Positions 1-49,830 of a stretch of DNA of 64,000 nucleotides are shown here, in pieces. Within the stretch, counting starts at the first letter, position 1, and each line of letters starts with the position of its first letter. Origin of the DNA: Paraphysomonas bandaiensis (Eukaryota; Protista; Chrysophyceae); the NCBI GenBank assembly GCA_965644295.1, contig CBFFRP010000185.1:128284-192283 (forward strand), read 5' to 3'. A program made the position numbers and the translations under genes. The notes beneath the pieces are model-generated. The model searched no databases, had not been told where the DNA came from, and worked only from the letters and a program-made list of their open reading frames with translations.

Positions 1-609
1 ATATGTAGAGTTATAGTGCCCACTATTTGCTGCTCTTTCATTGTTATCTCGAGTGTAAACCTAAATATATACGTATTTTTTTAAGATAGATCATCGCCAT
101 ACATGTAATTCATACTGCACTTCCGTTTTCCGAAAGAATTAGAAGATATTGTGTACTAGTATACAACCTTAGCCTTTGACTAGGTTTTTACACCAATGTT
201 GGTGTGACTAGAAAATTATCCAAGTTGACTAGGTCCAATAATAGATTCCGTTGTAATAGGCTGTCTAGATTCGTGTGACAATTCAAAGTATGAGAAGCGA
301 ATGACGCCTACTAGACGCCTTGAAATGTTAATGTGGTTGGATAAATCGATATCTTTGGGATGAGGTTGTGTGAATGTCTGATTATTTAGCAATAGGCGTT
401 GAGACCTTGCAGCAATTAGTGGCTAGAAGAATGCTAGTCATACTAGTTAGACCACTACCCGTAACTAATCAATACAAACTCTTTTATCCTACTATTTAAC
501 GCTACGAAAGCTGCTTGTGCGTCGCCGCAAGCACCAAGGTGCAACCACTTCCGTTCTTTTTGTGTGATATGAAATTCGCCTTTATCGTGTGTCCGTGGAC
601 TCACCGGCA

Positions 610-1664: not shown

Positions 1665-2773
1665 TGTAAACAACTCAGGTCTTGCAACCTAAGATCACTG
1701 AAAAGATATGTGAAATGGTTGTTTATCGAAACAACAAAACAGAATGCTTATTTAACTTATCACAGCCAGCAATACAAGCTCCCAAGTATCTCGCAACCTT
1801 AAGCTCCCAAAAGGTAGATCAATTAACTTAGCTATGATTAGTTAGATAAAAAAGAAGTGAGAAGACAGGTTCCTAGTCTAAGACCCCCATAGTACACATG
1901 TCAAGCAAACAACCAGCACCGTTCAATAAATATGACCATACATGCAGTACACTGAATACAGTTCATGTCCCATGTCCATTGTACCCAAAATGCGAACTGA
2001 AATAAGCCTAGAAAACGTCCTCACAGAAAACCGCCAGTTTACTGGTCCCGAAAAAACCAAAATCCCCGATTTCGGGACCGAAAACCCCAAAACCACCGGT
2101 TTTGGAATCTTACAGTAAAATCTCCGATTTCTGAGCTACAAAGACCCCAAAACAACCAATTCCCGAGTCTTGCAAGAAATCACCAATTATAGAGTCCCAA
2201 AAAAACAGAAAACACTAGTTTTCGAGTCACTAAAAATTCGCCAGCTCATTTCATGATAAACTCAATCTCATTCCAAACGTTAAATGCATTAACACATATC
2301 GATTTCGATTAACATTCCCAACGAAAGTTACACCTTCATATCTGTATCATATATCACCCATACCGTCCTCTCGCCATATGCCTAAGGCCCCTTTCCAATT
2401 TGTGCACCTTCCGGAGAAAATTGATGGAGTGTGATAACAGCAAATAGTCGTATAGCTGAGTCCAACGAGCTACTTAAATCGCTATAACACCGACACCGAC
2501 TACCATATGAATATAGGTGTATACCAGTGAGTAGAAATCCATTGCTCAAAACCGAAATTGTGTGCTCGAGGGCAAGTCCTAGTACTCTTCTTCCTCACAG
2601 TCCTCTCATAATATAATAATAAACATTTACTACATTCGTTTCCTATATTAAACCAGCTACATGCCTTAAATGAATATCATAGTTGTATTGGAGTTATATT
2701 AGTCAGTGTCATTATCATAATATTATATCATTAAACATGAGACAAGGGTGTTATAAAAGCCCACGGCTTTACA
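1665..2773 (-). repeat. 3' LTR of Gypsy element (1109 bp)
   Basis: Direct repeat of 8268-9375; by eye I found only a 1-nt and a 2-nt indel between them. Confidence 0.96.
2027..2245. repeat. Degenerate ~30-bp tandem array inside the LTR (also at ~8630-8847)
   Basis: About 8 units with quasi-palindromic cores such as aaaaccgccagttt, aaatccccgattt, aaaaccaccggtttt, aaatctccgattt, aaatcaccaatt, aaaacactagtttt. Confidence 0.6.
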
Positions 2774-2793
2774 TTACCCTTTCTCCCCCCTCC
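2774..2793 (-). other. Polypurine tract of Gypsy element
   Basis: Minus strand GGAGGGGGGAGAAAGGGTAA directly precedes the TGTAAA of the 3' LTR. Confidence 0.85.
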
Positions 2794-2804
2794 GGATGCT
2801 GTAG

Positions 2805-5800
2805 CTACTCCTGAATAATTTTGGGATAAGCCGCAGCCAGCGACGCATCAACCAAAATCATGCGAGTAGGGTCAAAATCCTTCTGGGATCCCCAACAGTA
2901 AACCAAATAGTTGTCGAACGCATAGTTGGCACCGTTAAGGTTAAATTGAGCGCTAATCTTACGTCTAGAATTCTTATGATACCAATGGGTATACGTAAAT
3001 TCCATGACATACGAAGCTGTTGCAAAATCTGGTAAACCCAGACTCTCGTACCACAGGTCACCGTAGAACCTGAGATCAACATAAACAACATCTCCAACCG
3101 ATACTGTTGTGATGTTCTCCTTCCTCATTGAAGAGATAAAACGCTTCGCCGTAAACGAGTCATACGCAAGATGCCGCAAGTAAGGCCTAGACTCGCAGAA
3201 ATCATAATATGCTTCACACTGAATATCCGGTGTCCATGGGATGTTCAGGATATCGCCGTCTGCATACTTCACCTTGAAAACCATCGTAGATTTGGTGCGT
3301 GAATCACCCGTATATGAAAGAATCTCCTCCACCTTAAATTGCTCATGGTCCCGCATCGCCGCTTCCATAGCGGATTCCTTATCTCCGAAAAATGGCTCAA
3401 GATCAGAGACAGAGTATTCCCGAATTCCCCCGGTAAGAAGATTTCGAATTTGAACATCATTCTTGTATTGCCGTACCACTTCGAAAGGACCCTTCATCCT
3501 CGAGGATAATTTCGGATGTGGTTTAGCACCAGCGTCGAACATAACAAAATCGCCTGGACAATACTGGTTTTGTTTGGCAGGATCCAAACCCGCTTCCGCT
3601 CGTTTCTCGACTAGAGACTTCTGGTAGTCTGCTGATATCTGACGAACAAGAGCTAAGTAATCGTTCAGCCTTTTCAACAGCTGATGAGACGGATCATTGT
3701 CTCTCCCTTGGGCAGCCAAAAGATTCTTATAGATAGAATCCTGGGACCCAAACGTCAGTTCGAATGCAGAATACCCCGTCTCACTACTCTCGTGGGTATT
3801 CAGAATGAACATGATAGTAGCAAGTAACAGTTCGTCCTCTAAAACAGCATCAGCTTCGATTCTCTTATCAAAACAAATAGCCCGGATGTGACGAACCACT
3901 TCCTTAATAATACGCTCACATCCGTTGACGTGCCTGTTGGCAATACTAAAAACATGACGAAGTCCTGACAACTTAACCAGTTCTGCGAAAAGTTCTGATT
4001 TGAGATCCGGACCCATATCTGATATAATCATATCCGTGAGCCCATATGTACACCAGCACTTCCACACTGCTGTAGCCAAATTGATAGCTGTCATTCCTTT
4101 CACCGCATATAGGTACACCAATTTCGTAAACAAATTAACCATGACCACAATATGCGTGTAACCAGATTTAGAAACAGGTGTAATAGCAACCGCGTCAATT
4201 CCCAGTGCACTCCTTGAATGAGGCGGTTTTAAATGTCTAGTGATAGGAATCAATCGCTGCTTCAGCTCTCTCCTATTCTTCTGACAGTTGATACATTCGT
4301 CCACGAAGTCTGCAACCACCTTGAAAGGCACGCCGTGTCCCGGAAATTGCCTACACAGACGTTTCCACGTCTCTTTCGCACCCCAGTGTCCTGCTTGCGC
4401 GTTGTGAACCTCTTTGATAGCCTGGTAATAATCTATCCTCTGTACCTCCGTAGGCGGCGCGATCTCTTGAACGTCGTCCTCAAAATCGTCTTTTTCAAAG
4501 ATGTTATGCAGTGTCACGAAGTTCACTTCATCTGAGTCGAAATCGTCACTTTCGTCCACAAATCCGGACAAATACAGCAATCTTGACAAGCAATCCGCAA
4601 CCACATTGTTCTTCCCTGGGATATGACGAATCAAAAAGTCAAAATCCTGCAAATAAATTCTCCATCGAATTATCTTCGCAACTTCTGATGCCTCCATCCA
4701 CACAAGGTTGTTGTGGTCCGTCTCGATTGTAAATTTCTTTCCTCTCAGATAAAACGAAAATTTCTTGACTGAATAGAATATACCAAAACCCTCCTTCTCA
4801 ATAGTACACCACTTCAAGGCTTGCTCTGACAATTTCTTGGAACAGATAGCAATAGTTTGCTGTTGAATCGGACTAGACCCAGTTCCCTCAACAGTCTGGA
4901 AAAGAATGCCTGCCACTCCATAGTCACTGGCATCTGTCCTAAGTGTCCACTCAAGATCATAATTCGGATAAAACAAAGCACAAGACTGTTGCAAACCACT
5001 CTTATATTTTTCAAACTCTTGCCTATAATCATGCTGCCATGTCGTTTCTTCCCAATTAAAACTACTCTTAGTCATATCCGTAAGATGTTTAACCAAATCT
5101 GAGTAATTCTGAACAAATGGAGCAAAGAATACTCCCATACCCAACAAAGATCTAATCTTCTTACATCTATTTCCATTCTCTGGAAAAGGAATATTCAATA
5201 AAGCCTCTTTCCTATCGTCCGTGAGCTCGAAACTATTGTGCCTTACCAAATAGCCAAAAAACTTGATCTCCCTAAATCCTAACCAGGTCTTTGCAAATTT
5301 CAACACAACTCCATGTTCAATGCATCTATCCAGGAAAATCTCCAGCTTCTTATACGCATCATCAAAATCATGTGCCAATAACAGAACATTATCAAATATA
5401 CACAGCGCCCATTCCAGATCTCCAAACAATTTGACTACCGCTTCTTGCAACACACTAATCCCTGGAGACACTCCCTCCGGAAGGAATAAAGGCTGAAATT
5501 GGCCCCACGGTGTTTGAACTGACAATTTTTCAGATGTGTTCTCATGCAACCTGATCTGATGGAACGCATTCGTGAGGTCAATGTCCATAAATATCTTATA
5601 GCCAATAATACGATCCAACTCATGTCTTACATTAGGAACTGTATAGTGTGGACTTGGAATGTACTTGTTGATTTGCACGTAATCCCCACAAATCCTAATA
5701 AAAGGTTTCGTGGCTTTTGGCGCGATCACCAAACAAGAAGCCCATGGCGACCTACTAGGAACATAGATGTAACCACACAGTCTCCTGAACTCCTTCTCCG

Positions 5801-6743
5801 CATCCTCATATAATCTAGGATTTACGGGTCTTGCCTTCGGCTTGATCCTAGGAGGCAAATTCTCAGCGAACTTGATGTTCAACGGATCCACTCCTTTTAT
5901 ACCTTCCCACCGCTCTGGAACAAATACCTCTACTCCCTTAGTCCTCAATAACTCCAGCACCGGTCGCGCTGCTGAGAACTCTGGGGACACGTGCTCACCA
6001 AACATATCCTCGAACTCGCTCAAAGCTTCCTCTCTAGTCTTTCCAAGAAAACTTGAGGCAAATCCGAACTGCGAAGGATCCGGAACATCCAATTCTTCAG
6101 GTGCTACCTCCCTACTACTGTCACACCACGGCTGCAATAATTCTTCAACCGCATTCAACAACAAATCATCCTCGGTAACATCGTCCTCACGCCTTTTAAT
6201 AAAACTTACTTCTGATTCAATTCGTTCAATAGTCCTTCCTTTAAGCATAAATAGAAAATAATCCCATAGATCCTTAACGATAGCCGGAAGTCCAATGATA
6301 ATATCGTTGCTACCCATATCAGCAACAATGAAATCCCCTTCATATAACACGAACTCTCCCTTGGAGTCTTCTCTTTCAAACCTCAATTTTAATTTCACTA
6401 CAAAACTACACTTCATTCTCGACGTTTTATCGGCAAATCCTATAACTGTTTCTTTTTTTATGACTTTGTTTTCACACACATGATTTCCAAACGTCTCAAA
6501 CAAATCCTTGGAGATGAAGTTAGATGTTAGGGCTCCAGTGTCGAACAATATTCCACGCACAGATATTATATAGTTATCATCACATACAATGCTTCCCCCA
6601 GAATGAGCCAATGTCAAGTCTTTTCGTTCTCGCGTATTACAGACATTCATCAAATTTCTGAGGAAAACTCGACTAACAGTCTCAGGATCATTCAAACCGT
6701 ACAATATTTCTTCGTGATCCTGTGAACCATTAGCCTCGCACAT
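2805..6743 (-). CDS. pol: Gypsy Pol polyprotein (protease, RT, RNase H, integrase, chromodomain-like region, extra C-terminal domain)
   Basis: LFDTGA (protease); DLTNAFHQI...LPEG...IFDN (RT); TDASDYG...TDH...ADCLSR (RNase H); H-x5-H...C-x2-C and D,D,E (integrase); GPF; FKVEEIL...FKVKY...PW (chromo-like). Open 1312-aa frame. Confidence 0.95.
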   Translation of the reverse strand: MCEANGSQDHEEILYGLNDPETVSRVFLRNLMNVCNTRERKDLTLAHSGGSIVCDDNYIISVRGILFDTGALTSNFISKDLFETFGNHVCENKVIKKETVIGFADKTSRMKCSFVVKLKLRFEREDSKGEFVLYEGDFIVADMGSNDIIIGLPAIVKDLWDYFLFMLKGRTIERIESEVSFIKRREDDVTEDDLLLNAVEELLQPWCDSSREVAPEELDVPDPSQFGFASSFLGKTREEALSEFEDMFGEHVSPEFSAARPVLELLRTKGVEVFVPERWEGIKGVDPLNIKFAENLPPRIKPKARPVNPRLYEDAEKEFRRLCGYIYVPSRSPWASCLVIAPKATKPFIRICGDYVQINKYIPSPHYTVPNVRHELDRIIGYKIFMDIDLTNAFHQIRLHENTSEKLSVQTPWGQFQPLFLPEGVSPGISVLQEAVVKLFGDLEWALCIFDNVLLLAHDFDDAYKKLEIFLDRCIEHGVVLKFAKTWLGFREIKFFGYLVRHNSFELTDDRKEALLNIPFPENGNRCKKIRSLLGMGVFFAPFVQNYSDLVKHLTDMTKSSFNWEETTWQHDYRQEFEKYKSGLQQSCALFYPNYDLEWTLRTDASDYGVAGILFQTVEGTGSSPIQQQTIAICSKKLSEQALKWCTIEKEGFGIFYSVKKFSFYLRGKKFTIETDHNNLVWMEASEVAKIIRWRIYLQDFDFLIRHIPGKNNVVADCLSRLLYLSGFVDESDDFDSDEVNFVTLHNIFEKDDFEDDVQEIAPPTEVQRIDYYQAIKEVHNAQAGHWGAKETWKRLCRQFPGHGVPFKVVADFVDECINCQKNRRELKQRLIPITRHLKPPHSRSALGIDAVAITPVSKSGYTHIVVMVNLFTKLVYLYAVKGMTAINLATAVWKCWCTYGLTDMIISDMGPDLKSELFAELVKLSGLRHVFSIANRHVNGCERIIKEVVRHIRAICFDKRIEADAVLEDELLLATIMFILNTHESSETGYSAFELTFGSQDSIYKNLLAAQGRDNDPSHQLLKRLNDYLALVRQISADYQKSLVEKRAEAGLDPAKQNQYCPGDFVMFDAGAKPHPKLSSRMKGPFEVVRQYKNDVQIRNLLTGGIREYSVSDLEPFFGDKESAMEAAMRDHEQFKVEEILSYTGDSRTKSTMVFKVKYADGDILNIPWTPDIQCEAYYDFCESRPYLRHLAYDSFTAKRFISSMRKENITTVSVGDVVYVDLRFYGDLWYESLGLPDFATASYVMEFTYTHWYHKNSRRKISAQFNLNGANYAFDNYLVYCWGSQKDFDPTRMILVDASLAAAYPKIIQE

Positions 6744-6746
6744 TTG

Positions 6747-8201
6747 TCAAGTCACTCCACCAGGCCTCGGCAAAATCTTTCGCGGCCCTTTGGAATCATC
6801 TGCCATCATCTGAGACAGCTTCTTCATCATCCATTTCCGGGTTTCCGTTGCAACTGCTCCATTATGACCCTGGACATGCTTACACTCCTTCCCTTTGTAG
6901 CAGTTCCCATACAACGCATACGCAACACAACCACGGGTTGGATTAACAGTCTTCTCCAGGTTCATCACCTGTTCTATAGCTTCCTTATCAGACTCTGGTT
7001 CGCCGAGCAACATCTCCTCAACCTCATTCTCGAAATCATCATCTGACATCCCGTCATCCTTGACCACAACTATCGGGTCAACCTCCTTGTCATCTAAATC
7101 ACTGTAGAAATCATCCTCAACTCGGTCCGCAAACTGCACGTTGTTTAAAGATTTCGGTTTCTCCTTTGCAACGTATCCATTGTCCCGATTCCTCGAACTC
7201 CTTTGAATTTGCTTCCTACTGAAATCGGACCCTTCATAAGGCACCAATCTAATGTTCTTGGACGCCTCATAATGCTCACTCGCCTTGGAAACGTATGTAT
7301 CCAGAAACTCTTCAACATTACCATAATTAGTATCCGTCACTCTTGGAATCTCCGCCAGAATTCGTTTGTTGTAAGACTCGTCGATCAACTCCAAAAATAC
7401 TTGAGCAGATCCAAACTCTTTTCCTCCAACCGGCGGACACTTAGTACTATTTGCCTCCATCATGATAGTAAACGTACGCATAAAAATACTCTTTCGCTTC
7501 AAAATCTCTTGAAAAAACAGCTCATGTGTATTCGGCCGCACTGATTTCCAATCCAGTGGCTTAAAATATCTCAGCGCGTATCGCAAAGTCTCAATGAACT
7601 CCACTTTAGACAACACCTTGGTCTCCTTAGCCATCAGTTCACAAAACTTTTGAGCACTCAGCTTAACAAACATTTTATCCGTCAAGCTATTGTTGAACAT
7701 AAGCAGGTTCCGAACACGCCTGCTAACTATCTGGGCTGGCTCAAGTTTAATCCCATTGATCTGTTCGTATTCAAACCATTGGATGATAAACTTTGTAAAA
7801 TCGCTGAGCTCCATCGAATCCAGAAAAATATGCTTATGTGGCGGTTTTTCAACATTGATAACGACCTGTTTCCTAACCTCTATGTCATCCGAGCCTTGCG
7901 CTTCCCTAATAAACACAGAAGTTCGCCTTTCCTTCTTTTTCTGTTTCGGATCTTCAGCAGATTCATCATCCTGCTCCTCTCGTCTGGCACCGACACTATC
8001 ATTGACCTCCTGCTGAACCGCTGCCAGCTCATCCAGAAACTGTCCCTCTCCTATGGCAACCCTTGTCTCAAGGTGGTCCACCCTACCAGCGGTCGTTGCA
8101 CACAACTTTGCAACCTCTCCTAACTCATTAGCGATTACTCTCAACATTCCTTTGATTTCATCCATTTCGGAAGAGACAATGGGACTGCCCGAATCAGACA
8201 T
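6747..8201 (-). CDS. gag: Gypsy Gag-like protein with N-terminal coiled coil and CCCH-like finger
   Basis: First ORF after the 5' LTR, in frame with pol; C-x8-C-x5-C-x5-H motif near the C-terminus. Confidence 0.85.
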   Translation of the reverse strand: MSDSGSPIVSSEMDEIKGMLRVIANELGEVAKLCATTAGRVDHLETRVAIGEGQFLDELAAVQQEVNDSVGARREEQDDESAEDPKQKKKERRTSVFIREAQGSDDIEVRKQVVINVEKPPHKHIFLDSMELSDFTKFIIQWFEYEQINGIKLEPAQIVSRRVRNLLMFNNSLTDKMFVKLSAQKFCELMAKETKVLSKVEFIETLRYALRYFKPLDWKSVRPNTHELFFQEILKRKSIFMRTFTIMMEANSTKCPPVGGKEFGSAQVFLELIDESYNKRILAEIPRVTDTNYGNVEEFLDTYVSKASEHYEASKNIRLVPYEGSDFSRKQIQRSSRNRDNGYVAKEKPKSLNNVQFADRVEDDFYSDLDDKEVDPIVVVKDDGMSDDDFENEVEEMLLGEPESDKEAIEQVMNLEKTVNPTRGCVAYALYGNCYKGKECKHVQGHNGAVATETRKWMMKKLSQMMADDSKGPRKILPRPGGVT

Positions 8202-8267
8202 AATTTAAAAAATCTATTTCCTTAAAACTATTCTTCACTTATGTGATTTTATCGTGAGTAAATTTAC

Positions 8268-9375
8268 TGTAAACAACTCAGGTCTTGCAACCTAAGATCA
8301 CTGAAAAGATATGTGAAATGGTTGTTTATCGAAACAACAAAACAGAATGCTTATTTAACTTATCACAGCCAGCATATACAAGCTCCCAAGTATCTCGCAA
8401 CCTTAAGCTCCCAAAAGGTAGATCAATTAACTTAGCTATGATTAGTTAGATAAAAGAAGTGAGAAGACAGGTTCCTAGTCTAAGACCCCCATAGTACACA
8501 TGTCAAGCAAACAACCAGCACCGTTCAATAAATATGACCATACATGCAGTACACTGAATACAGTTCATGTCCCATGTCCATTGTACCCAAAATGCGAACT
8601 GAAATAAGCCTAGAAAACGTCCTCACAGAAAACCGCCAGTTTACTGGTCCCGAAAAAACCAAAATCCCCGATTTCGGGACCGAAAACCCCAAAACCACCG
8701 GTTTTGGAATCTTACAGTAAAATCTCCGATTTCTGAGCTACAAAGACCCCAAAACAACCAATTCCCGAGTCTTGCAAGAAATCACCAATTATAGAGTCCC
8801 AAAAAAACAGAAAACACTAGTTTTCGAGTCACTAAAAATTCGCCAGCTCATTTCATGATAAACTCAATCTCATTCCAAACGTTAAATGCATTAACACATA
8901 TCGATTTCGATTAACATTCCCAACGAAAGTTACACCTTCATATCTGTATCATATATCACCCATACCGTCCTCTCGCCATATGCCTAAGGCCCCTTTCCAA
9001 TTTGTGCACCTTCCGGAGAAAATTGATGGAGTGTGATAACAGCAAATAGTCGTATAGCTGAGTCCAACGAGCTACTTAAATCGCTATAACACCGACACCG
9101 ACTACCATATGAATATAGGTGTATACCAGTGAGTAGAAATCCATTGCTCAAAACCGAAATTGTGTGCTCGAGGGCAAGTCCTAGTACTCTTCTTCCTCAC
9201 AGTCCTCTCATAATATAATAATAAACATTTACTACATTCGTTTCCTATATTAAACCAGCTACATGCCTTAAATGAATATCATAGTTGTATTGGAGTTATA
9301 TTAGTCAGTGTCATTATCATAATATTATATCATTAAACATGAGACAAGGGTGTTATAAAAGCCCACGGCTTTACA
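8268..9375 (-). repeat. 5' LTR of Gypsy element (1108 bp)
   Basis: Direct repeat of 1665-2773 with TG...CA ends. Confidence 0.96.
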
Positions 9376-12300
9376 AGGTCGCAGAGATCCTGGAAATTAG
9401 TAAGGAGTGGGCTAGAGTAGTATGGCCGTCTTGTACTGTGCATACGCCAGTGCCATAATCCAGCAGTTAGTAAGCGTTCGATGGCACTGTCAATCGCAAT
9501 TGTACAGACAGTGTAGTTATTTTTTCCAAGGATGCGATCGACTTCATGCCAGTCTTCACCCGCAACTGCGTCCGCAATATAGATGCCCTTGTCCTCAAAC
9601 GTCCACTCCGTTTCATCTGTGGTACGTCTTTCGGGATGAGACCTCACCCAGGTCACCTGTCGTTTGCAATCTCTGCTGGCTGCGATGCTTTCGAGTAGTA
9701 CCCCTTTTGCACGGTGACCGAGAGCTCTGCGTCTTGTGGAGAGTGCTTCCTCAGTGCGGGTGCACACTGCCTGACAGTCTGTGTGGCTTCTTATGTGTTC
9801 GGGAATACGTGTTGAGAGTATAAGCCCCATGGCTGTGCCTATGAGTTCATATGCGTATGAGTCCAAACCGGGCACGTCACGAAAGGGTGTATCTAGTCGT
9901 AGTATTGTGGTTGTACCATCTTCCCAGGCATTTTCTGGGGGTAAGTAGACGACCGCTGCACCTCCTCGGTGTGTCCATCGGGTTCGCGGATTGACATGAG
10001 TGAGGCGACGAGTGGAGAGCGCACTGGCTGTGTATGATCCATCTGTGAAGATAGCCTTGAAAGTATCTGGTTGGACACTATTAAGGCCGAGTTCTTGTTT
10101 TAGGTTGGTCAGCATGTGTTCATCCTGTGGTTCGGGGGGCTCAGGTTCCTGAAGGGTAAGGCCCAATTCCGTTCCCCATTCCCTGAGGCTGAGAACATAG
10201 TGGTGGTATTGGGGCTGTGGCTCTGTTGTCTGAGTGAGTAGAAAATGTGCTGCTTGACCTGCTTCTCCCCCGAGGGTTATTGCGCGCTGTAGAGATCCCC
10301 ATTTTTGCTCCTGCGCTGAGTCTGTGAAACGTTTCATACCTAATCCGTTGTGCTTGAGTGAGAGGTAGATCAGTTCCGTGGGGTATCCAGGGCCTAGACT
10401 GAGGGCCTTTCTGTAGAGGGTTGCGCAAGCAGCGTCAATTTCTCTGTACCAGTGTAGCGGCCATGAAGCTTTGGTGGCTCTATATAGAGCAAAGTCGGTA
10501 TGATTTGGGTCTCGATAACCATGACTTTACAGCCGGCTGAGGCCTGTTTGATCCCTAGGTGTGTGGTCACGACTTTCAGGTATTTTAGACACCAGTCATG
10601 GGAGGCCTTGTCTGTGATTGTGAGAGGAAGGTCTGCTCCGAGGTAATGTATCGACTCTAGTGATGTTTGGATAGGGACTGGGTGTGGGCGCCATGACCAG
10701 TCGTAGAGAATGATGTAGCCAATGGGGTCGGAGGACTTGTTGGAATCCTGTAGGATCGGAAACACTGTGCAAACTACTTTGGGGATAGAGAGTTCCATTC
10801 CCGAAAGTACGCAGAACGCAGATATTTGTTGGGCAATGAGTTGGGCAGCGTGTATGGATTTAGCTATTGTGTTAAGATCATCCGCGAAGGAGATCTTTAT
10901 TTCGCCTGTAGTCGGAGTCGTGAGTTGAATAGTTGGTAACGTTGGACTCGTTGTTGACAGTTCAATGTCCAGCCACGTGAGAAGGATGTCGTAGAGTGCC
11001 ACCCAGGCGCATGTGGATTCTGTGCCCCCTTGGGTGATACCCCTTTCGGCTTCGAAACCCAGACTGAATAGTGCAATGAAGTGGCCGTCTGCGGACAGGA
11101 GGTCAAGGAGAGAACGTGGCTCTATGTTGTTTGCCATGAATGGTGTCCAGGGAAATGTTAGACCGCCGGCATCTAAGTTGCCAAACCAGTCAACTACATC
11201 GTCCGGAACGCCCAGTCGTGCCCACGCGAGACGCATGAGGTTAGGCGCAATTGAGTCGAAGGCCTTCTTGAAGTCCCAGAGTGTACATATATGCTGGTCG
11301 CCTTTTCGTCTTGCTTCTTCTGCAGCCGCGAGTACCCGTAGTATCGCTGTGTCCGTCCCGTTCCTCCAGCGATAACCATGCTGGGACGGATGCAAAACTT
11401 TCTGTTCCTCCCATACGGTAAGAATTCTATGAGTGATTATCCTTGTTAATATTTTCCTACTGACTTCAAGCAGACCAATCGGTCGGAGATTAGTGAGGGA
11501 GGATTCTCCTGGTTTCTTGAGAATGGGAGACATTACCCTGTCTCTCCACCAAATGGGCACATGTTTATGTTTCCAGAGAGATCTGGTGAGGATGTAAGCC
11601 TCTCGCTGAACTACCGGTGGCCAGGATTTGACCATGTTGGAGGAGACCATTGAGGGTCCAGGCGCGCGGTTGAAGGATAGAGAGTGAAGTGTGCAGTAGA
11701 ATTCATCCTGGGTGATGTCTTTTGCAAGAGTAGATTTGAGTGTGGCTGCCATGGCCGGAGTGGTCTTGGTACAAAGGGCCCGTCGTAACCCCAGTTGCAG
11801 GGGAAGAGGAATTTTCGAGCGGGGGTGGAGTGGTTCCTGGCATGTCGCTGAGCCCGGATCAAGAAGTGATTTCCACCATGTAGGGTCATCCTGGAGCTGT
11901 TGTGCTACAGGGTCAAGTCCAGGAGGTTTGGCATGATGTTCACGGAAGTGCGCATTAATGCCTTCATGAATGTCTTGCGGCGTTGTGAGGATGTGTCCGT
12001 CCGTTGTTTTCACCGTGGTAAGTCGGAGTGGTGTTTTGACCTTGAGACCAATTTTCTGAAGAATTGCTTGAAGTCTTTTCTGCTGTAGCAGTGCCTCCAT
12101 CTGCTTGGTGCGAGCCGTGAGTCTAGTCCGCATTTCTGTCCTGGCTCTTCCATGAAGAAGTCCTCTCAGTCGCAAGGCAATTCGGAGAAGGTTTTTCTTG
12201 GTGGCTTGCTTTGCGTTCCAACCCAGGATTACTCGTGGGTCCGCGTTGCGGTGGCTGCACCAGAAGTTGATGTCCGATATGCCTTTGATGTGACCCTGAG

Positions 12301-13036
12301 AACTCCTGAGATAGGAGTCCCATCGGGCGAACCATGCAGTGATGATTTCGTGGGTGGGGGTGGTTGCCGGGGGGCCGCGCCATCCATGCCGTTTGTATCC
12401 AGCAGAATTGAACATCTTTTGGATAATCCGCAAAACCATGAGCATTCCTTCCTGTATTACTCTCATTTCCGGGGAAAAGCCATTCTTGAACTTTGAGCGT
12501 GTGCGCTGACAACGTTCGTGTAGGCGTGTGCTATGTGTACATGCAGGACGCTTCGCCTCAAGCGAAGCCTGGAGGGTTATGTGATGGATGGCCGCTAGTC
12601 TGTTGGCTGCCACCTCAGGAGGGAGTATGGCAGTCGATCCGTTGTCTAAATGTGGTAGTTGTGCATGAAGTTGGAGGAGTCTTGCGGTGTATGCCTGTAC
12701 TGCCTTGGAGTCCTTCGGGTTTACATTGAGACGGGGGGGGATTCGGAGGTGCGACTCAGGTGGTCGAGGGTCAAGATTGACTGGTACGGTGAAACCGACC
12801 CAGACCGGTCGATGATCGAAGGCTGCTGCGAGTAATGAGGGGGAGTCAAGGCAGCCAGTGTCCGTAACAGACATGTTCGGAGGTAACGGCGTGTGTAGAA
12901 TATGATCGATCCGCGATATTCCTTTGTCTAATCTGTGGAAGGTATGATATGTTTTCCTGGGTAGGAGAAGCTCATGGAGTGGTGCAGCCAGTTGGAGTTT
13001 GTCGGCTGGGATGAGGTTGTTGTTCAGAAAGCTATT
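9376..13036 (-). pseudogene. LINE-A ORF: APE endonuclease C-terminus, reverse transcriptase, RNase H; +2 frameshift at ~10483
   Basis: SRIDHIL...DHRPV (APE end); LRPIGL, QHGYR, DFKKAFDS, GITQG, FADD (non-LTR RT); FTDGS...ELIG...TDCQ...WVRSH...IAD (RNase H). Removing one TA from ctcTATATAgag joins ORFs 10394..13060 and 9333..10337. Confidence 0.9.
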
Positions 13037-13269: not shown

Positions 13270-13858
13270 TCGCTCAACAAAGTCAGACTCTCACACCCAG
13301 AGCAGGGGGATAAGTACCGGAGATATTATATTTCTCCGGGAAAGTAATGAGAGCCACATGTATAGTCAGAAGATAGCGTTCTGCTCACTCATAGTCAACT
13401 GTTGTGTGGTACAAGGGACACTAATAAGTTTATTCGTCGGGTGATTGATGCCTGTTTATTCGTCAAGGCCCAAAGACGTCTACACAAGAAATACTTAATA
13501 GTGTCCCTTGTACCACACAAGCATTTGGCTATGAGTGGGCAGAACAACAATTGCTGACTATATAATATATGCGGCTCACGTTTGTTTCTCGGAGAAATAT
13601 CCCCGATATTTATCCCCCAGCCAGAAAATCACGAAAAGGTGCGAGGGTCCGACTTTTTGTTGAGGGTGAAAAGTCAAACATCCGGGCTGTTCACCTCAAG
13701 GACAGAGCGAAAGTGGTTGCCCCTTGTTGCTTGTGGGGATGCACAAGCAACTTTTTAGTAACTCCACATAATAGTTAAGCACTACTAGTTAATTAAATTG
13801 TTTGCTGCATTAGTTCTGATTCTTACATGCCTATTACTCATAATCAGACATTCACTAC
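13270..13858 (+). mobile_element. SINE-like element with inverted duplicated head; 12-bp TSD AAGATAGAACTG
   Basis: TSD at 13258-13269 and 13859-13870; head forward (~13270-13430) then inverted (~13447-13667); LINE-type 3' tail ending aatcagacattcactac. Confidence 0.8.
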
Positions 13859-19752: not shown

Positions 19753-21129
19753 ATGGCGGAGTTCTTACCAGGAGATGATATATTAAAGGGCAGGATGTGG
19801 GCGGGCAGTGTATATGCGATGCATCACTTCGCTCCTAATTCCTCAGAGTCGATAGTGTTTCCCAGTCGAAGTAACACCCTGCGGTGCCCATATTGCATGT
19901 CGTATATAGGTAAAGAGGGCAATGTAAGGGCGGCTAGACTATGGACCAACACACATGGAAACACTCTTCTTGAGGTTAATATCTATAGAAGGTGTGCTGC
20001 TCTGTATGCATATGTCTGTATGATTGGGAGTTGTGTTATTTGTTCAGTTTGGCTCGATGTCATCAGTGGGACGAGGAAGGTGGACTTTGTTTCTATACTT
20101 GCTGGCGCTGTAGCGAGCCTCTCTCTGTAAACTCTAATGGGAAAGTGTTCGGCACGGATGAGGTGTAATAGTATTAGTTCAGTCTGGTCCTGCTGAAATT
20201 TTATCTAGATGTGGACCCCTGCAAAACTCAATGGAAAGTACTTGCTTTTAAAACAGCCATTCCGGATACTCTTCTGTTCGCTGAATTTAGGTGCGATATG
20301 TCTGTATGTCGAGCTGACCAGATTAGCTTCGGTGCTTATTGTATTAACTCATACAATGTATGTGCTAGATGTGCATGAAGCTTGTGTGAGTGCTCTACAG
20401 GCATGGGCCGCCGCACATCCCACGCTTACAATTAAAATAGACACCTATGAGCTGCCACTGGCCCAACTCCGGTCTGGTACATCCTTTAGCGCCCTCAGTC
20501 CTGCGGTGGATCTTGTTATCATTGCACACCATGCAGAGGTAGATTTGAACTTCGACGTGATAGCGCTTTTTGCACCTTGGGAAGTTTTCCATGTAATATT
20601 TATGTGATAGGGTCGTTTGCTTCTCACTGATGAAGACGGTCTTTACAACACGTTCATCGGACAAGCTTGTGCAGTTAGCATAGGAAATGTCGTGATACTC
20701 ATTACTAGTGAGGATGTAAATGAGACAACGCACGACATGGATCCAGACTTGTTGACGGAGTTAGTGGAATGTGGTCAGGAGTCAGCAGAATGCCTCCATT
20801 TACAACAAAGGTGACAAATCTTATATTTTCTATCATATTTGAATGTTGTAAACACATATTATGTGGCAGACTTCTCAGTTGCAATGATGTGTTTTCCGCC
20901 AACCAGATGGGTATGTTGGAGATGCACGTATCTCGGGCATCCAAACCATTAGAAGTGCCACCGGGAATAGCAAAGAAAATTATGACTAAGACTGAGGGCC
21001 AATCTGGTATTAGTAGTAGTAATTCGTTATGTCAGTTACTGTGATGTGTTGCATATTGGTATGTACTAGTAATATTCTTTAGAATGTAAGATAGATTGTA
21101 ACAAGTTGTTTAAAACTAAAGTATTGTGA
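19753..21129 (+). CDS. Multi-exon hypothetical protein
   Basis: ATG at 19753; chained short ORFs separated by GT-AG introns; probable last intron 21007-21082 and stop TGA at 21127-21129. Exon structure is approximate. Confidence 0.55.
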
Positions 21130-21222
21130 AATCTGTTTTTTCAATTTTTGATGCGTGATCACGAGTGTAAGCAACACTCAAATTTTTGTAAAAATGTGAA
21201 GTATATACTGGATTGTATACAA
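20998..21222 (+). repeat. 225-bp direct repeat, left copy (target-site duplication of LINE-A copy 2)
   Basis: Identical by eye to 22976-23200. Confidence 0.93.
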
Positions 21223-22978
21223 GTAGTGAATGTCTGATTATTTAGCAATAGGCGTTGAGACCTTGCAGCAATTAGTGGCTAGAAGAATGCTAGTCATACT
21301 AGTTAGACCACTACCCGTAACTAATCAATACAAACTCTTTTATCCTACTATTTAACGCTACGAAAGCTGCTTGTGCGTCGCCGCAAGCACCAAGGTGCAA
21401 CCACTTCCGTTCTTTTGTGTGATATGAAATTCGCCTTTATCGTGTGTCCGTGGACTCACCGGCGCTATTGATCTGGGGGTCTCCCTTTGGGATGGGTCTC
21501 CATTGGTGTTGGAGGGGGCTCAGCGTTCTGGATTAGGGTCCTGAGTGCACCTAGTTCCAGATGTGTGGGTTGAGAGTGGTGGGGATTGTTGGGAGGAGGA
21601 GTTGGGTTTGTAGTCTGTGTTACTGTGCTCCTGTGGGGCCGCGGGTGTAGATAGAGTTGTCGAAGCCGTCGGCGTTGTGGAGGTCTGGGCAGTCCAGTGC
21701 TCTGTCGGGTAGGACCTGTGAGGTGTGCACGTGTGTCTGGAGTCGGGGACGCTGTGGGGGGTCTTCGTTGGACCCCTAGTAGTCGAAGTACTCTCGGACG
21801 TTGTCTTGACTGACTGCGTTTCGGACGGGGTCTCGGGAGTAGCCTGGGCGGCCTTTTGGACATGGTGATATAGCGACAACCGCGATCCTGTAGCATAAGC
21901 TTCGCTGCAGTGTAAAGCGGTTGCAGGAGATTAATAACCGCTGTTTCTAGGTTCCGTAGACTGTGTGCCGTCAGGTGGTTGTGTATGGCATCTTCGAAGA
22001 CCGTTTCCAGTTGGGCTGCTGTGATGGTTCCAGTCCAGTATCTCTCGACCTGTGGGATGGAGGGATTCCAGGCTCTGCTGGAGAGTCTCCGTAGTGCAGA
22101 TGTGATCCAGTTGGGTAAGGTCTGAGTTCTCTGTATTTCGTGGAGCACATTTTTATGCGATTGAAATGCAGTTTCCCTTATTTGGGTGATGGATTCATGT
22201 GTGCAGTCGAGGCACATATGTTTTAGGGAATCTAGTCGAAACCCGCAGTCAGAGCATGCGGCTTTGGTCAGGTCAAGCCCCTGTTTGGTTTTGGCCCGGT
22301 TCCTCCCTATGCAGAAAGATTTGTCCCATGTCAGTGCCGTGTTGAGTATTCTTTGGCGTAGATTTGAGCTGAGTTTGTCTTTGGATGCACTGCCATCCGC
22401 TTGAGCTAGTTTGCGCGGGAGGTGTACTCCGCTATTGGTCCAGTAGCCAGGCGCTCGATCAGGATTGTGTCCGTAGCGTTGATCTCTGGTTGAAGTGTAG
22501 TTCTCAAGTGTCCTTAGGTCGCAGAGATCCTGGAAATTAGTAAGGAGTGGGCTAGAGTAGTATGGCCGTCTTGTACTGTGCATACGCCAGTGCCATAATC
22601 CAGCAGTTAGTAAGCGTTCGATGGCACTGTCAATCGCAATTGTGCAGACAGTGTAGTTATTTTTTCCAAGGATGCGATCGACTTCATGCCAGTCTTCACC
22701 CGCAACTGCGTCCGCAATATAGATGCCCTTGTCCTCAAACGTCCACTCCGTTTCATCTGTGGTACGTCGTTCGGGATGAGACCTCACCCAGGTCACCTGT
22801 CGTTTGCAATCTCTGCTGGCTGCGATGCTTTCGAGTAGTACCCCTTTTGCACGGTGACCGAGAGCTCTGCGTCTTGTGGAGAGTGCTTCCTCAGTGCGGG
22901 TGCACACTGCCTGACAGTCTGTGTGGCTTCTTATGTGTTCGGGAATACGTGTTGAGAGTATAAGCCCATGGCTGTGCC
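21223..22978 (-). mobile_element. LINE-A copy 2, 5'-truncated within RNase H
   Basis: Near-identical to 370-1664 plus 9380-9839; ORF 21465..22907; 3' end cattcactac. Confidence 0.95.
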
Positions 22979-23200
22979 AATCTGGTATTAGTAGTAGTAA
23001 TTCGTTATGTCAGTTACTGTGATGTGTTGCATATTGGTATGTACTAGTAATATTCTTTAGAATGTAAGATAGATTGTAACAAGTTGTTTAAAACTAAAGT
23101 ATTGTGAAATCTGTTTTTTCAATTTTTGATGCGTGATCACGAGTGTAAGCAACACTCAAATTTTTGTAAAAATGTGAAGTATATACTGGATTGTATACAA
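22976..23200 (+). repeat. 225-bp direct repeat, right copy
   Basis: Matches 20998-21222; GCC microhomology with the LINE 5' truncation point. Confidence 0.93.
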
Positions 23201-23275: not shown

Positions 23276-23495
23276 ATAGTATTGAATGTCTGATTATTAG
23301 CAATAGGCGTACAAGAGTCGGAACTAATTTCACTAACAAGTGCTTAACTCTGATATTTTACAACTTGGCGCTACGAAATCTATTTGTGCGTCACCGCAAG
23401 CATCAAGCACCAAGGTGTAACCACTTTCGCTCTAGCACTCAAATCAAACGCAGTGAGCTAGCAGAATTCTGACTTCAGGACTGTGAGTCTTTAAG
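23276..23495 (-). mobile_element. 5'-truncated SINE-like copy (3' tail only)
   Basis: Reverse complement matches 48200-48429 and 56310-56534, including the structured core. Confidence 0.8.
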
Positions 23496-23535: not shown

Positions 23536-24143
23536 TATAGGAAAGTCTGATTATTACATGAGAACGGTTGTGTACAGAAACTAGTTTATATCTATAGACT
23601 AACTACAGTAATAACTAGATTTGCTAAATACTACTAGTGGCGGGCAACCGTCTCGGGACTGCTTGTGCATCGCTGCGAGCACCATGGTGCAACCGTCCCT
23701 TGTATTGAGGTTAGTCGGGGGGTCTACCTTTAGGCAATGTGTCTGGCGGGCCTGTATCATGGGTTATACGGGGGGTGGTTGGGGCGAGATGTATATGAGA
23801 GTATAAGTCGATGGTGGAGATGGTGCTGGTTGTTGAGGTGGGGTTTCGGCCACAAGTAAGGAAGAATTGTTTCCGGAGTAGTTGCGCTTGCCTCTGTCGG
23901 GTCTGCTGGACTCTTGCAGAGGATAGAATTCTTGGGGTGCGGTTAATCAGGGGTACGCCCATTGAGGTAGGAGTCTGCGACGTTTAAGGGAGGGTCAGAG
24001 TGTCAGAGTTATGTAGATGGGAGGATAGTGGTCCGAGGGAAAGTGAGATGGTCCGAGGTGGAGGCGTGTAATCTGTAGAGTCTCGGGGCGCCGCTGACTG
24101 CTGTGAATCAGCTGGACGTAAATAGAGTAGGTGGGGTTGTCTG
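23536..24143 (-). mobile_element. LINE subfamily B, 3' fragment (copy B1)
   Basis: ORF end DTLPKGRPPD*; 3' UTR core related to LINE-A; near-duplicate of 24144-24545. Confidence 0.8.
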
Positions 24144-25540
24144 TATATATAAGAAAGTCTGATTATTACACAAAAACGATTGGGTACAGAAACTAGTCAG
24201 TATTATATCTATAGGCTGACTAAACTGGGCTTGCTATGTACTACTAGTGGCGGGCAACCGTCTCGGGACTGCTTGTGCATCGCTGCGAGCACCATGGTGC
24301 AACCGTCCCTTGTATTGAGGTTAGTCGGGGGGTCTGCCTTTGGGCAATGTGTCTGGCGGGCCTGTATCATGGGTTATACGGGGGGTGGTTGGGGCTAGAT
24401 GTATATGAGAGTGTAAGTCGGTGGTGAGATGGTGCTGGTTGTTGAGGTGGGGTTTCGGCCACAAGTAAGGAAGAGTTGTTTCCGGAGTGGTGGTGCATGT
24501 CTCTGTCGGGTTCGGACTCTTGTAGAGGATAGAATTCTTGGGGTGGATGTCGCTTGGAGTAGTTGGAGTATTTTAGGTGTCGGTTGAGTATCCTGTGACT
24601 GGCGTTGCTGTGAGTGTGGTGGGTTCGTAATCGGTGTTACTGGTGCTGTGTCTGTGTTGTGGTGTCTCAGACCTCTGTTTCGAAGCATGCAGAGCCCTCC
24701 ATCATATATATAGATAGGGGGAGCAGGATAGAGGTTACGGATTTTTCGAGGGCGTGGAACTGATGTTCGGGCTGTGAGCTGGATATGTGGCGTCCGAATG
24801 CGTCGGCCAATTGTGTGGCAATAATGTGGCCGGTCCAGTAGCGCTCAACCTGGGGGATGTTTGGATTCCATGCGGCTTTAGCTAGTTTGATTATGGCGGT
24901 GTGAAACCAGGGATGAGGAAGCGTGTGTTTGCGAAGTTTGTCGAGCTTACTGTGGTGTGCTTGGTGAACATCTTCACGTATTTGAGTGAGGTCCGGGTGT
25001 GTGCAAGTGAGAAGCATGTGCGCCATCATGTTGTCTGATGGTTGTGCACAGTCTGGGCATGCGGAGGCCGTTAAAAGTGATCATGCCCGGTTTTTCCTTT
25101 GGCTCGTCGGTTTCTTCCCATCGCATATGATTTGTCCCATACGTATGCCGTCTCGCGTATACGTTCTGGTAGAGAGATGATGGAGTATTTGGAGGAATTA
25201 TGGGTACGGAGAGGATGGAGCTTGTGTGGGAGCCTTGTTCCGCTGCGTGGCCAATACTGCGGGTCTCGCTGCGTTTGTGCAGCATACACGCTATCTCGTC
25301 GGAGGGTGTATTGATGGAGGTCCCGCTGGTGATGGAGATCTGTGACGTCTCCTAGCATGTGAGGAGGTGTGTATCGTATGTTCGCCAGTGCCATTGCCCC
25401 GTGGTGAAGAATTCTTCCAGTATGTGTGTAGCGTCAGTTGGGTTGTCTAAGTTGGGTTCGCGTGTGTGTGGGCGTGAAGAGTTTGAAGAGTAGGAGAAGT
25501 GGTCTGTCGCCCAGCTGTGATTCTCTGCTGAGACACCATC
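24144..25540 (-). mobile_element. LINE subfamily B, degenerate 3' fragment (copy B2)
   Basis: Frameshifted peptides YWPRSG..WDKSYAMGRNR, CPDC..HMLLTC, WNPNIPQVERYWTG are homologous to LINE-A; (TA)n tail; 5' end approximate. Confidence 0.85.
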
Positions 25541-26208: not shown

Positions 26209-29200
26209 TTATTCAGCTGACTCCATATACATTATTAAACACTCAGCATTCTTATCATTCCACATCATGTCGGACTCTGCATACAGCCGAATCGCTGCAA
26301 TTCTAGATCTCATGATGGATAGAGCAGTTGCCAAGTGGTCCGAGTTCGGAGTTCGAATGTCGATGCAAGCCTTATGAAGTGCTAGCAGTGCAACTCGGCA
26401 ACTGTCCAACAGAGCCGATAGGGACTCACACAACAAATCGTAGTCATCAGGTATGCTTTCTCTTGGTACACCAGAACTAACAAACGTCGCATCCACAATA
26501 TCATATATATAATGTCGCAACACCTCCATAAAATGCCCAAACCCTGTAGGCGATGCCGCGTATAGTTCACCTTTTAACTGTGCATATTTCCCTCTCAAAC
26601 GGTCAGAATTGAAATGAGCTACTGCCTGAAACGCCTGACGTATCTGCCTAAACGCACTGAAGAAAAATCTTTCCTCTTTGGCAGAGTAATGCGCATAGGC
26701 CAATTCAGAACGTCCTCTAACTCTGTACCGGTGCAAGTCACCCCACGTGTGTCGAGAGAGTGCGGTTAACTGAGAGAGCTCAAGCAGTCGCCTCGTGACC
26801 AAAGAGAGTGCGTCAATATGCTCGCCAGACAGCATCATACTTAGTGGCCAGGGGGGTTCAAATCGCACCTTCAATTTCTGAAGTCCTTCTATAGAAAAGG
26901 CTCCGATCAGATGTTTGTACCGGAATCCATCTACCACATCTATTGCATTCGAGTGCCCGTCAATTAGGGTGTGTAACACAGGGACTGCCGCGGCTCGCTG
27001 GTGCTCCTCTTTTACCTCATCATCAGTCATCAGGGTGCGTTTTCCTGCACTACTTTCTTCCTCGTCGGCCATCACTAGTCCAACGACATCTGTAGAGGCT
27101 TCGTTCGGTTGCTGAGAAAGTGCCTGACAGAACGCAGCAGCCACGGCTCGAGAAGACCAGAGATGCGAAGGTCGCTGAGGGGGCACATCTGGCTGCGTCA
27201 CAGTAATTGATCCACTCATAATTTTGGAGAATCTCATGCTACAATTCGCTTGGATATGTGTATCCACCAATATCCCACCAATAGTCACCAGGAAATTGCT
27301 CTGATCCGACAGTAAAAATATATGGTGAAGGCAGTCAATATAATCTAAAAGGCGCGTGTCTTGAATTGCTCCCAGCAAGAATGCCTGGTCAATGGCAAGG
27401 CACTGAGTCCGTATTGGTGCACAAAGGCTATCGCGCACAACACATGTAGATGGAAGTAGGGAGAAAGTCGACAGCAGTGAAGAATCAGGATTCCTCTTAT
27501 CATCACAATTATCAGTATCAAGAAGAAAGGGAATGTTGTTAGCCCGGCATAGATCTGAAATAGACTGTCGGAAGCATGATTTTTCTAGAAAATTATCTTC
27601 AGCAGATGTCACCCATTCGTCAAGAGAATAGAACTCTTTTAGAGCAGACAAGTAGTCATTTTCATCCTCATGAACCCTAGATTCTGAGAAACGAACGCCA
27701 GAATTAAAACTCATATCAACATCTGTACCCCCACTATTAACCAACTCCTCATCACCAATTCCAAAATCCTTACCAGCAAATCCACAATCACGAACACTAT
27801 CACTAAACACAACAGAACTATCGCCACTCTTCCCACCATCAATATCAGAGTCACCGCCATCATGGTGACGCAAACTCAGTGAACTATTACCTCCTGGTGC
27901 CTGATGAACATGCTGCGAACTACGCACTCCAATATCAATCGTTGCACCATCAATATCAGATTCACCGCCATCATGGTGACGCAAACTCAGTGAACTATCA
28001 CCTCCTGGTGCCTGATGAACATGCTGCGAACTACGCACTCCAATATCAATCGTTGCACCATCAATATCAGAGTCACCGCCATCATGGTGACGCAAACTCA
28101 GTGAACTATCACCTCCTGGTGCCTGATGAACATGCTGCGAACTACGCACTCCAATATCAATCGTTGCACCATCAATATCAGAGTCACCGCCATCATGGTG
28201 ACGCAAACTCAGTGAACTATCACCTCCTGGTGCCTGATGAACATGCTGCGAACTACGCACTCCAATATCAATCGTCTCACCTTCAATATCAGATTCACCG
28301 CCATCATGGTGACGCAAACTCAGTGAACTATCACCTCCTGGTGCCTGATGAACATGCTGCGAACTATGCACTCCAATATCAATCGTCTCACCATCAATAT
28401 CAGAGTCACCGCCATCATGGTGACGCAAACTCAGTGAACTATCACCTCCTGGTGCCTGATGAACATGCTGCGAACTACGCACTCCAATATCAATCGTCTC
28501 ACCATCAATATCAGATTCACCGCCATCATGGTGACGCAAACTCAGTGAACTATCACCTCCTGGTGCCTGATGAACATGCTGCGAACTACGCACTCCAATA
28601 TCAATCGTCTCACCATTAACATCAGAGTCACCGCCATCACGGTGACGCAAACTCAGTGAACTATCACCTCCTGGTGCCTGATGAACATGCTGCGAACTAC
28701 GCACTCCAATATCAATCGTCTCACCATCAATATCAGATTCACCGCCATCATGGTGACGCAAACTCAGTGAACTATTACCTCCTGGTGCCTGATGAACATG
28801 CTGCGAACTACGCACTCCAATATCAATCGTCTCACCATCAATATCAGAGTCACCGCCATCATGGTGACGCAAACTCAGTGAACTATCACCTCCTGGTGCC
28901 TGATGAACATGCTGCGAACTACGCACTCCAGCATTAATCGTCTCACCATTAACATCAGAGTCACCGCCATCATGGTGACGCAAACTCAGTGAACTATCAC
29001 CTCCTGGTGCCTGATGAACATGCTGCGAACTACGCACTCCAGCATTAATCGTCTCACCATCAATATCAGAGTCACCGCCATCATGGTGACGCAAACTCAG
29101 TGAACTATCACCTCCTGGTGCCTGATGAACATGCTGCGAACTACGCACTCCAATATCAATCGTCTCACCATCAATATCAGAGTCACCGCCATCATGGTGA

Positions 29201-47843: not shown

Positions 47844-47949
47844 ATAATTGTTATATTATAAAAGAATACAACAACAAATTTTAATCGCATTTCAGTATAC
47901 CTTGTACAGTCCCAATAATATATCATCGTATATAATAACTACTACGACT

Positions 47950-48429
47950 CTCTCAACAATGTAGGACTCGCACCTTCTGGGGGATAAATACCGGAGAAAC
48001 TAACGTGAGCCGAATATATAGTCAGTACATATTGTTCTGCCCGCTCATAGCCTAATACTTGTGTGGTGCAAGGGGGGCACTAACAAGTTTTGCGTGTTGA
48101 CGAATAAACAGGCATCCGGGACTGGGCCCACCTCAAGAGTACCAAGAGGGTATTGGGCTGCCTGTTGAAGTCAGTCATCCAGGATGAGTTCATCTTAAGG
48201 AATCAACAATCCTGAAGTCAGCAGCTGTCAGGTATATCTACATTCTGCTTGTTCACTGCGTTTGGTTTGAGTGATAGAGCGAAAGTGGTTGTACCTCTTG
48301 GTGCTTGCGGTGACGCACAAGCAGCTTTCGTAGCGTTAAATAGAGTAAGATATATATCAGAGTTAAGCACTAAATTTGTCCTGACTTTCAAATGCCTATA
48401 TATTGCTAATAATAAGATATTCACTACTA
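47950..48429 (+). mobile_element. SINE-like element, older copy
   Basis: Colinear with 56053-56534 in head, core and ttcactacta tail; no clean TSD. Confidence 0.82.
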
Positions 48430-48782: not shown

Positions 48783-49830
48783 CAGGGCCTGGTAACCATT
48801 AATGGCCCAGTAATGGTAGTCCAGTTCCCGGCAATTATAATGGCCCATTAATGGCCATTAATACCTACTAACTTAAAGAAGCAGATAATACCGCTCATAT
48901 AATATATTGTGTGGTGCTCCCTTAATTACTAATTTTTAATTAAAAATAACAGACTACTTCTCGCTCTCTACTGGGGCACATCAGGATCTTCTTGCAGGGC
49001 TTCATGGAGGGTATAAGCATCCCACAACACGGCTCGTAAGAATAGCAACGATTCTAGACGATATAGATTCATGTGTCTACGCTCAGATGTCATAATCAAC
49101 TTTGCACGACTAAAGATCCTCTCAACAACATTAGAATGTGCTTCAATATGAAGCAAGCAGCGGTAGTGGACTAAGAGGTACTATAAGTCGCTGTCTAGAA
49201 CAAGCTGTGCAAAATCAGTTCTTTCACTCTCGTCCTCGTTATTTCTGTCGGTTGCACCAACATCAATGGATGAATCTAGTTGCAGTTGATGTATAACTGC
49301 TCTTCTCTCATTGCCTGTCAACTCTCTTTTATAGTTCCCTTGAATTTTTTAGCCATTGCCTTCTCAAAAATTGCACTGGCAACAATGCTTGCATTCAGGG
49401 AAAGGTATGGATATATATATATTGACAGCTTATTATTTAGCAGTAGGCGCTAAAAATCTGCACCAATGTAGTGGCTAGTTAGTTGAATGCTATAAGCAGA
49501 CTATTTAGACCTCTATCCATAGCTAATCAGCACAAACGCTATTATCCTACTATTTAACGCTACAGAAGCTGCTTGTGCGTCGCCGCAAGCACCAAGGTGC
49601 GACCACTTCCGTTCTTAATGTTGATTGTGAGTTTCGCCATGATCGTGGCAACAATGCTTGCATTCAGGGAAAGGTATGGATGCAGCTCTGGAAATTCTTG
49701 TAGCAGTATATCAAATAACTGGCGGGCTTGGTACAAATTGGTTCCAACTCTTTGTAAGGCAAGCGTAACACTCTGTAATTTTTCAAGCTGTGTCAAACAT
49801 TGTTTCAGCTGGAGTAAGAATCTGTAGAAA
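48783..49830 (-). mobile_element. hAT DNA transposon remnant (family 2, TIR CAGGGCCTGGTAA)
   Basis: TIR shared with the MITE at 55797; transposase fragments SNVVERIFSRAK..RRHM..LESLLFLR (hAT dimerisation domain) and LQSVTLALQ; other end not found. Confidence 0.8.
49413..49645 (-). mobile_element. LINE-A-related 3' UTR fragment inserted in the hAT remnant; 36-bp TSD
   Basis: tggcaacaatgcttgcattcagggaaaggtatggat at 49377-49412 and 49646-49681; insert homologous to 380-590; (TA)n tail. Confidence 0.88.

Follow-up and report, generated by a model that had tools for sequence, protein, structure and literature searches.

What does a short RNA motif do when unrelated-looking retrotransposon tails all carry it, and what reads it? 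The question is raised by the window studied here, a 64-kb stretch of DNA. The earlier note had described a GNRA-capped structure, repeated nine times in the window and shared by two LINE subfamilies and a SINE. It was suggested to be a multi-helix recognition element or possibly a catalytic RNA.

The repeated motif is a three-way junction

Alignment confirmed all nine core copies at the reported positions and on the reported strands. We derived a covariance model from five master lineages; it returned exactly these nine copies from the window at E<1e-8, and the next match had an E value of 0.36. On the minus strand, the junctions are those of LINE-A copy 1 (505-553, a full junction), LINE-A copy 2 (21361-21409, in a 5'-truncated copy at 21223-22975), a LINE-B stub (23652-23704, stub 23541-23939), a LINE-B 3' fragment (24262-24314, fragment 24153-25440) and a LINE-A2 stub (49560-49614, stub 49417-49647, with a 36-bp target-site duplication). 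Also on this strand is a decayed junction with a 7-nt duplication (23371-23432), in a 5'-truncated SINE-like copy at about 23277-23467. On the plus strand, SINE-like copies carry junctions at 13705-13758 (decayed; copy 13270-13858), 48277-48333 (copy 47946-48429) and 56373-56427 (copy 56049-56536). The first and last of these copies have 12-bp target-site duplications.

As independent evidence the nine copies count for less, since they represent four lineages only: A (two identical copies), A2, B (two identical copies) and the SINE-like element (four copies). Differences among the SINE-like copies are mostly post-insertion decay. The CGAAAG/CTTTCG outer helix, which had been read in two of them, is exact only in one (48280); those at 23373, 13708 and 56376 are decayed. 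The reported change of the inner stem, GCG/CGC to GCA/TGC, is present as a G-C to A-U swap in P3, yet it is one event among the four lineages of the window. The surrounding UTR diverges in part only; A, A2 and the SINE-like element remain alike over the following ~15 nt, and a second, terminal motif is common to all families.

The motif had been described with two helices. It has three. They are P1, P2 (GCAC-C(UU/AU/AA)G-GUGC) and P3, and the near-invariant GCAC and GTGC segments, with their C(UU/AU/AA)G loop, form P2. In LINE-A copy 1, on the minus strand, the P1 arm at 543-553 pairs with that at 505-515, apart from one G.A mismatch. P2 (531-542) has a CUUG loop and is followed by J2/3 (529-530, UU), P3 (519-528, GCGA loop) and J3/1 (516-518, ACA). 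Single-sequence folding of the intact window copies gave the three-way junction. For family A, an alternative long hairpin was 2 kcal/mol worse. In folding energy most window copies are ordinary (z about 0); the case for structure is a comparative one. Each LINE family has its own version of the P1 letters and the SINE-like element carries the A-type.

Genome-wide counts refer to the 62.6-Mb assembly. One core pattern had 1,057 exact matches, against 0 for a reversed control, and a pattern for the P3 half had 1,449. In total, the motif has >1,400 genomic copies, across the SINE-like element and four LINE families. The two LINE subfamilies first recognised are therefore at least four.

Other features of the window were recorded in passing. 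A 1,833-amino acid ORF on the minus strand (26209-31710) contains a 111-bp unit repeated 17.5 times and has only a sub-threshold Pfam match. A copia-type RT fragment is at 62135-63979 (minus). Inverted repeat copies of ~480 bp, possibly MITE-like, are at 55100-55581 and 58438-58911.

The motif belongs to a clade of giant LINEs

Each of the four autonomous families (A, A2, B and C) has the junction in its 3' UTR, on the sense strand. In each, it is followed by a second motif, UAAUAAUCAGA(C/U), at the 3' end. The host LINEs have a giant single ORF of about 2,800-3,700 codons in intact genomic copies. This encodes SET, APE and RT domains (APE and RT by Pfam match), then RNase H-type motifs, of the D-E-D-H-D type and read from an alignment without a Pfam match, and a CCHC knuckle. 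Identity to family A in the RT region is 73% for A2, 49% for B and 46% for C. The LINE family is young, with >40 identical copies and with intact ORFs.

Among RTs of solved structure, human L1 ORF2p is the closest in sequence (E about 1e-8). The C-terminal domain is predicted to be all-helical (model pLDDT 92), and its fold is best matched, though modestly, by the C-terminal knuckle regions of the R2 and human L1 proteins (Z 6.0-6.8). No conserved PD-(D/E)xK motif of a restriction-like endonuclease was found across 78 relatives, and none after the CCHC knuckle. The C-terminal sequence PKGRPPD is kept in all four families with synonymous changes (window about 613-635, minus; L039, L037). The protein ends PPD, DNP and G(I/V)G recur among relatives (P0002, P0016, P0044).

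Protein searches revealed a large LINE clade, with 971 representatives at 50% clustering. The SET domain lies directly before APE (L031 minus-strand ORF, L033, L036/L037; P0001, P0004, P0005), family C has two SET stretches, and one relative has Ulp1 protease and SET domains. We found no description of SET-domain LINEs in the searchable literature and, judged from that literature, the SET-bearing clade seems undescribed. Proteins near-identical to those of families B and C are present in ENA metagenomes, one of them a TARA sample. Hence, the host organism is probably marine.

LINE-A copy 1 is in two parts, both on the minus strand. The 3' part (370-1664) contains the CCHC region, the ORF end and the 3' UTR. 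The 5' part (9376-13006) contains the end of APE, RT and RNase H, and is 5'-truncated and frameshifted. A young Ty3/gypsy LTR element (1665-9375), with 1.1-kb LTRs that are 99.7% identical, separates the two. At L024, a LINE-A is abutted by the same Ty3/gypsy LTR end.

Autonomous and non-autonomous copies share a fixed 3' terminus

Element copies do not stop at the junction but continue to a fixed 3' end, which lies 85-170 nt further downstream. In LINE-A copy 1 this end is the terminal motif AAUAAUCAGACAUUCAC (370-386, minus), where reverse transcription would start. All 30 LINE-A copies that were compared, having been chosen for an intact motif, share a single end point, 169 nt past the start of the core. 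They lack poly(A) and their 5' ends vary. Target-site duplications of 12-21 bp, overlapping the final bases of the element, are present in several LINE-A copies. A 225-bp direct repeat (20998-21222 and 22976-23200) flanks LINE-A copy 2, and a 36-bp direct repeat (49377-49412 and 49646-49681) flanks the LINE-A2 stub. As target-site duplications, both are unusually long for an element with no detected restriction-like endonuclease.

The SINE-like copies at 13270 and 56049, with their 12-bp duplications, end in the LINE terminus. From the 5' arm of P1 onwards, the SINE-like element is clearly similar to LINE-A. In a recurring LINE-A derivative with an internal deletion, part of the ORF N-terminal region is fused to the last ~330 nt, including the junction (L002, L003, L006, L010, L015). 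Together, these boundaries make the junction the 5'-most part that non-autonomous elements retain. Two more junction types recur, in L007/L020/L027 and in L013/L019.

A search for a polymerase III-derived head in the SINE-like element gave no tRNA in a tRNA scan and no Rfam match. The element is better called a SINE-like non-autonomous retroposon than a classical SINE. By eye, an HDV-like nested fold is possible in the heads (13270-13424, 47946-48100 and 56049-56210), which have no Rfam match, and the copy at 13270 has an inverted duplication of the head (13302-13621).

The core is under selection

Among families A, B and C, the 37-nt core is identical at 31-34 of 37 nt (84-92%). At fourfold-degenerate sites, identity is 24% for A-B and 21% for A-C, which is saturated, and 43% for B-C. 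Preservation of the core next to saturated synonymous sites argues that the core is under selection. Across the five master lineages, 81 of 81 helix cells are paired, compared with 30-42% in slid controls, and 5 pairs have changed on both sides. Independent covariation events are few within this genome. Hence, relatives were sought in other assemblies.

The fold recurs in relatives from other assemblies

The foreign DNA compared was that of clade relatives with complete C-termini, at about 25-35% amino acid identity. A JGI scan gave mostly distant loci that end before the UTR. In the foreign relatives the junction follows just after the stop codon. Its stems are rewritten and the U-Y/G-C/W-C-A signature is kept. 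In L095, a site 13 nt past the stop codon ranked first in 56 kb, over both strands, using a model made from host sequences only; its E value of 0.09 is weak alone, though the site is at the predicted place. L050, L091 and L095 each fold singly into the junction. RNAalifold recovered the junction from an unsupervised alignment of six lineages, these three with A, B and C.

We also used a descriptor, consisting of P1, P2, U-Y, the G-C pair and R-C-W-C-A. Written by hand after the sequences had been seen, and so leaning towards structure, it matched 35-45 nt after the stop codon in L049, L050, L051, L094 and L095. Controls gave 2 stray matches in 300 kb and 0-1 matches in 500 shuffles per lineage. 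In an alignment of eight clades, one row each, 116 of 120 helix cells pair, compared with 74 +/- 4 for shuffled partners, in a register also set by hand after the sequences were seen, which leans this test the same way. Two to four pair types are seen at the majority of positions; the first P3 pair is always G-C. A second covariance model did not recover the held-out L049, L051, L092, L094 and L069, and the more distant L079, L086, L090 and L053 had no clean match. From these comparisons, the predicted junction fold is well supported in L050, L091 and L095. It is probable, on the basis of the descriptor, in four or five further relatives.

The P3 loop had been reported as always GNRA. In this genome that largely holds, with GNRA in 1,391 (96%) of the P3-half matches, but the closest foreign relatives have GACU, CCCC or UCCC, and longer loops also occur among the relatives. 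The GNRA loop was therefore rejected as a defining feature and lies outside the motif definition. The terminal motif is recognisable in L050, L051, L092, L094 and L095. Past the stop codon of the distant relatives L068 and L069, P1 and P3 are kept and ~38 nt are inserted in the P2 loop, which suggests that the tip of P2 tolerates additions.

The junction is likely a template-recognition element

The RNA fold is real and under selection, and in function it is of a kind already known. We consider it likely that this is a stringent template-recognition element for the LINE protein. Position, selection, cross-assembly covariation, the boundary of the SINE-like element and signatures of target-primed insertion support the proposal of a multi-helix recognition element that LINEs and a SINE have in common. 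The RNA would fold into the three-way junction, with the stem letters free to vary. The junction letters (U-Y before P3, the first P3 G-C pair and W-C-A after it) would be a conserved core for protein contact or tertiary structure. We infer that the single ORF protein binds the junction, through one or other of its domains, and so loads the RNA, and that mobility needs the junction. Once bound, the RNA would be held with the terminal motif, 85-170 nt downstream, set on the APE nick, where target-primed reverse transcription would begin. Copying in trans would be open to SINE-like elements and to those with internal deletions, since they keep junction and terminus.

A more tentative suggestion, and on balance an unlikely one, couples the junction to translation. 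In this case the terminating ribosome would have the junction just beyond its footprint. Together with the conserved C-terminal Pro-Pro-Asp, the junction would slow termination, and the new protein would thereby pass to its own RNA (cis-preference). Judged by general footprint size, P1 would fall just outside a terminating ribosome. Of 12 lineages, 7 have 34-37 nt between the stop codon and the junction U-Y, and two more have 40 and 45 nt, whereas the onward stretch to the terminus ranges from 84 to 150 nt. In L069 the U-Y comes 70 nt after the stop codon, and its P2 has extra nucleotides (about 34). Conservation of PKGRPPD in all four families fits too, as does the PPD that ends several foreign relatives. 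However, A and A2, the most abundant families, have a distance of 72-73 nt and four extra residues past PPD, and SINE-like copies without an ORF retain the motif. Similar spacing could also come from a compact UTR and common descent. A stop-codon read-through or selenocysteine signal is excluded because the next in-frame stop occurs after 1 to 35 codons, without pattern, and all three stop codons are used.

Translation coupling is compatible with template recognition and the two can coexist. Stringent recognition and co-translational cis-preference are usually treated as alternatives. Conceivably, though we doubt it, a widespread and undescribed clade of giant SET-LINEs uses a new class of 3' element, in which a junction just past the terminating ribosome, and Pro-Pro-Asp, hand the protein to its own RNA. 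If true, both properties would be joined in one short module.

We regard it as improbable that the junction is instead read by a host factor, for RNA stability, export or 3'-end formation, and not by the LINE protein. Such a role is compatible with a 3' UTR position, and genomic copies lack poly(A), so that the RNA may need other protection. Against it, the P1 letters are family-specific, with the SINE-like element copying the A-type. Furthermore, the motif accompanies this LINE clade alone, at 85-170 nt from the element end.

The earlier note had left room for a catalytic RNA. A new self-cleaving ribozyme might be expected from a compact three-way junction with invariant junction letters, and ribozymes are common in non-LTR elements. 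However, there is no known ribozyme core, and the copies run through to the fixed downstream 3' end. The hammerhead sequence CUGANGA is absent on both strands in seven lineages. Pattern searches for twister, twister-sister, pistol, hatchet, hairpin and HDV-like cores gave only scattered short chance matches. The proposed Rfam search returned no known family, at the gathering score or in permissive scans, chance matches being far below the gathering score; neither the UnaL2-type 3' stem-loop nor other Rfam families gave a covariance-model match. Cleavage would also part the ORF RNA from the terminus on which insertion is templated. For family C, 67 exact matches to the 5' half were counted, of which 44 have an exact match to the terminal motif further downstream; terminal matches are more numerous, at 94, which is the polarity of ordinary 5' truncation. 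With no Rfam or core match, and given the consequence of cleavage, we consider a ribozyme very unlikely. A resemblance to group II intron domain 5 (GNRA hairpin, AC bulge) was rejected by eye, there being no AGC/CGC triad in register.

Finally, a functionless remnant of shared ancestry or recent tail swapping would suit the plain copy identity that makes up most of the similarity within the window. It is hardly credible, however, and largely refuted by the foreign loci: the core has stayed conserved where synonymous sites are saturated, pairs have changed in a compensatory way, and other assemblies have this fold too.

Relationship to known systems

The closest parallels to template recognition by the junction are the stem-loops of eel UnaL2/UnaSINE1 and zebrafish L2. 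In those systems, as here, a structured 3' UTR element is common to a LINE and a non-coding partner, the element is kept while its flanks drift, and a short repeat-like terminus replaces poly(A) (PMC3747384, PMC11194090). The UnaL2 and zebrafish L2 elements are single stem-loops, whereas here a three-way junction lies 85-170 nt upstream of a separate terminal motif. The LINE clade is also a different one, and the junction is without an Rfam match. We found no report of a three-way junction in a LINE UTR in the searchable literature; the topology and the junction signature were found neither there nor in Rfam.

Small structured RNAs inside non-LTR elements also include HDV-like, hammerhead and twister retrotransposon ribozymes, for example L1TcRz (PMC3185411). 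The HDV-like ribozymes of R2 and L1Tc are at the 5' end, which they define. Their catalytic cores are absent here.

The R2 3' UTR core consists of two stem-loops with a hinge in Bombyx and of a pseudoknot in the vertebrate A-clade (PMC11194090, PMC12503042). Like the junction, it is multi-helix with little primary conservation; letters of single-stranded linkers matter, stems tolerate change, and binding and template positioning are separate layers (PMC11194090, PMC12503042). Conversely, R2 is site-specific and has a restriction-like endonuclease, while the LINEs here have APE, many insertion sites and a different fold.

Dualen elements have a giant single ORF, as do the LINEs here. Dualen/RandI and its SINEX partners in Chlamydomonas also share with them APE, RT and RNase H, and SINE partners with short trinucleotide-type tails (PMC9977147, PMC4640811, PMC3747384). 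Occasional very long target-site duplications (225 bp here) are a further likeness (PMC9977147). The layout and the long duplications thus resemble Dualen, but here SET precedes APE, and the region past the CCHC knuckle showed no restriction-like endonuclease. Since dual endonucleases define Dualen, the host LINE was not assigned to it.

Implications

To our knowledge, stringent template recognition has been dissected only in a few LINEs (L2, R2 and SART1). To these the junction adds a fold of compact size, 50 nt, which has a small conserved core and persists in relatives with protein identities of about 25-35%. Its natural variants, in families A, B and C and in the foreign relatives, are ready-made swap experiments. 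A short portable handle, together with an RT that has its own RNase H, would be of interest for RNA-templated insertion.
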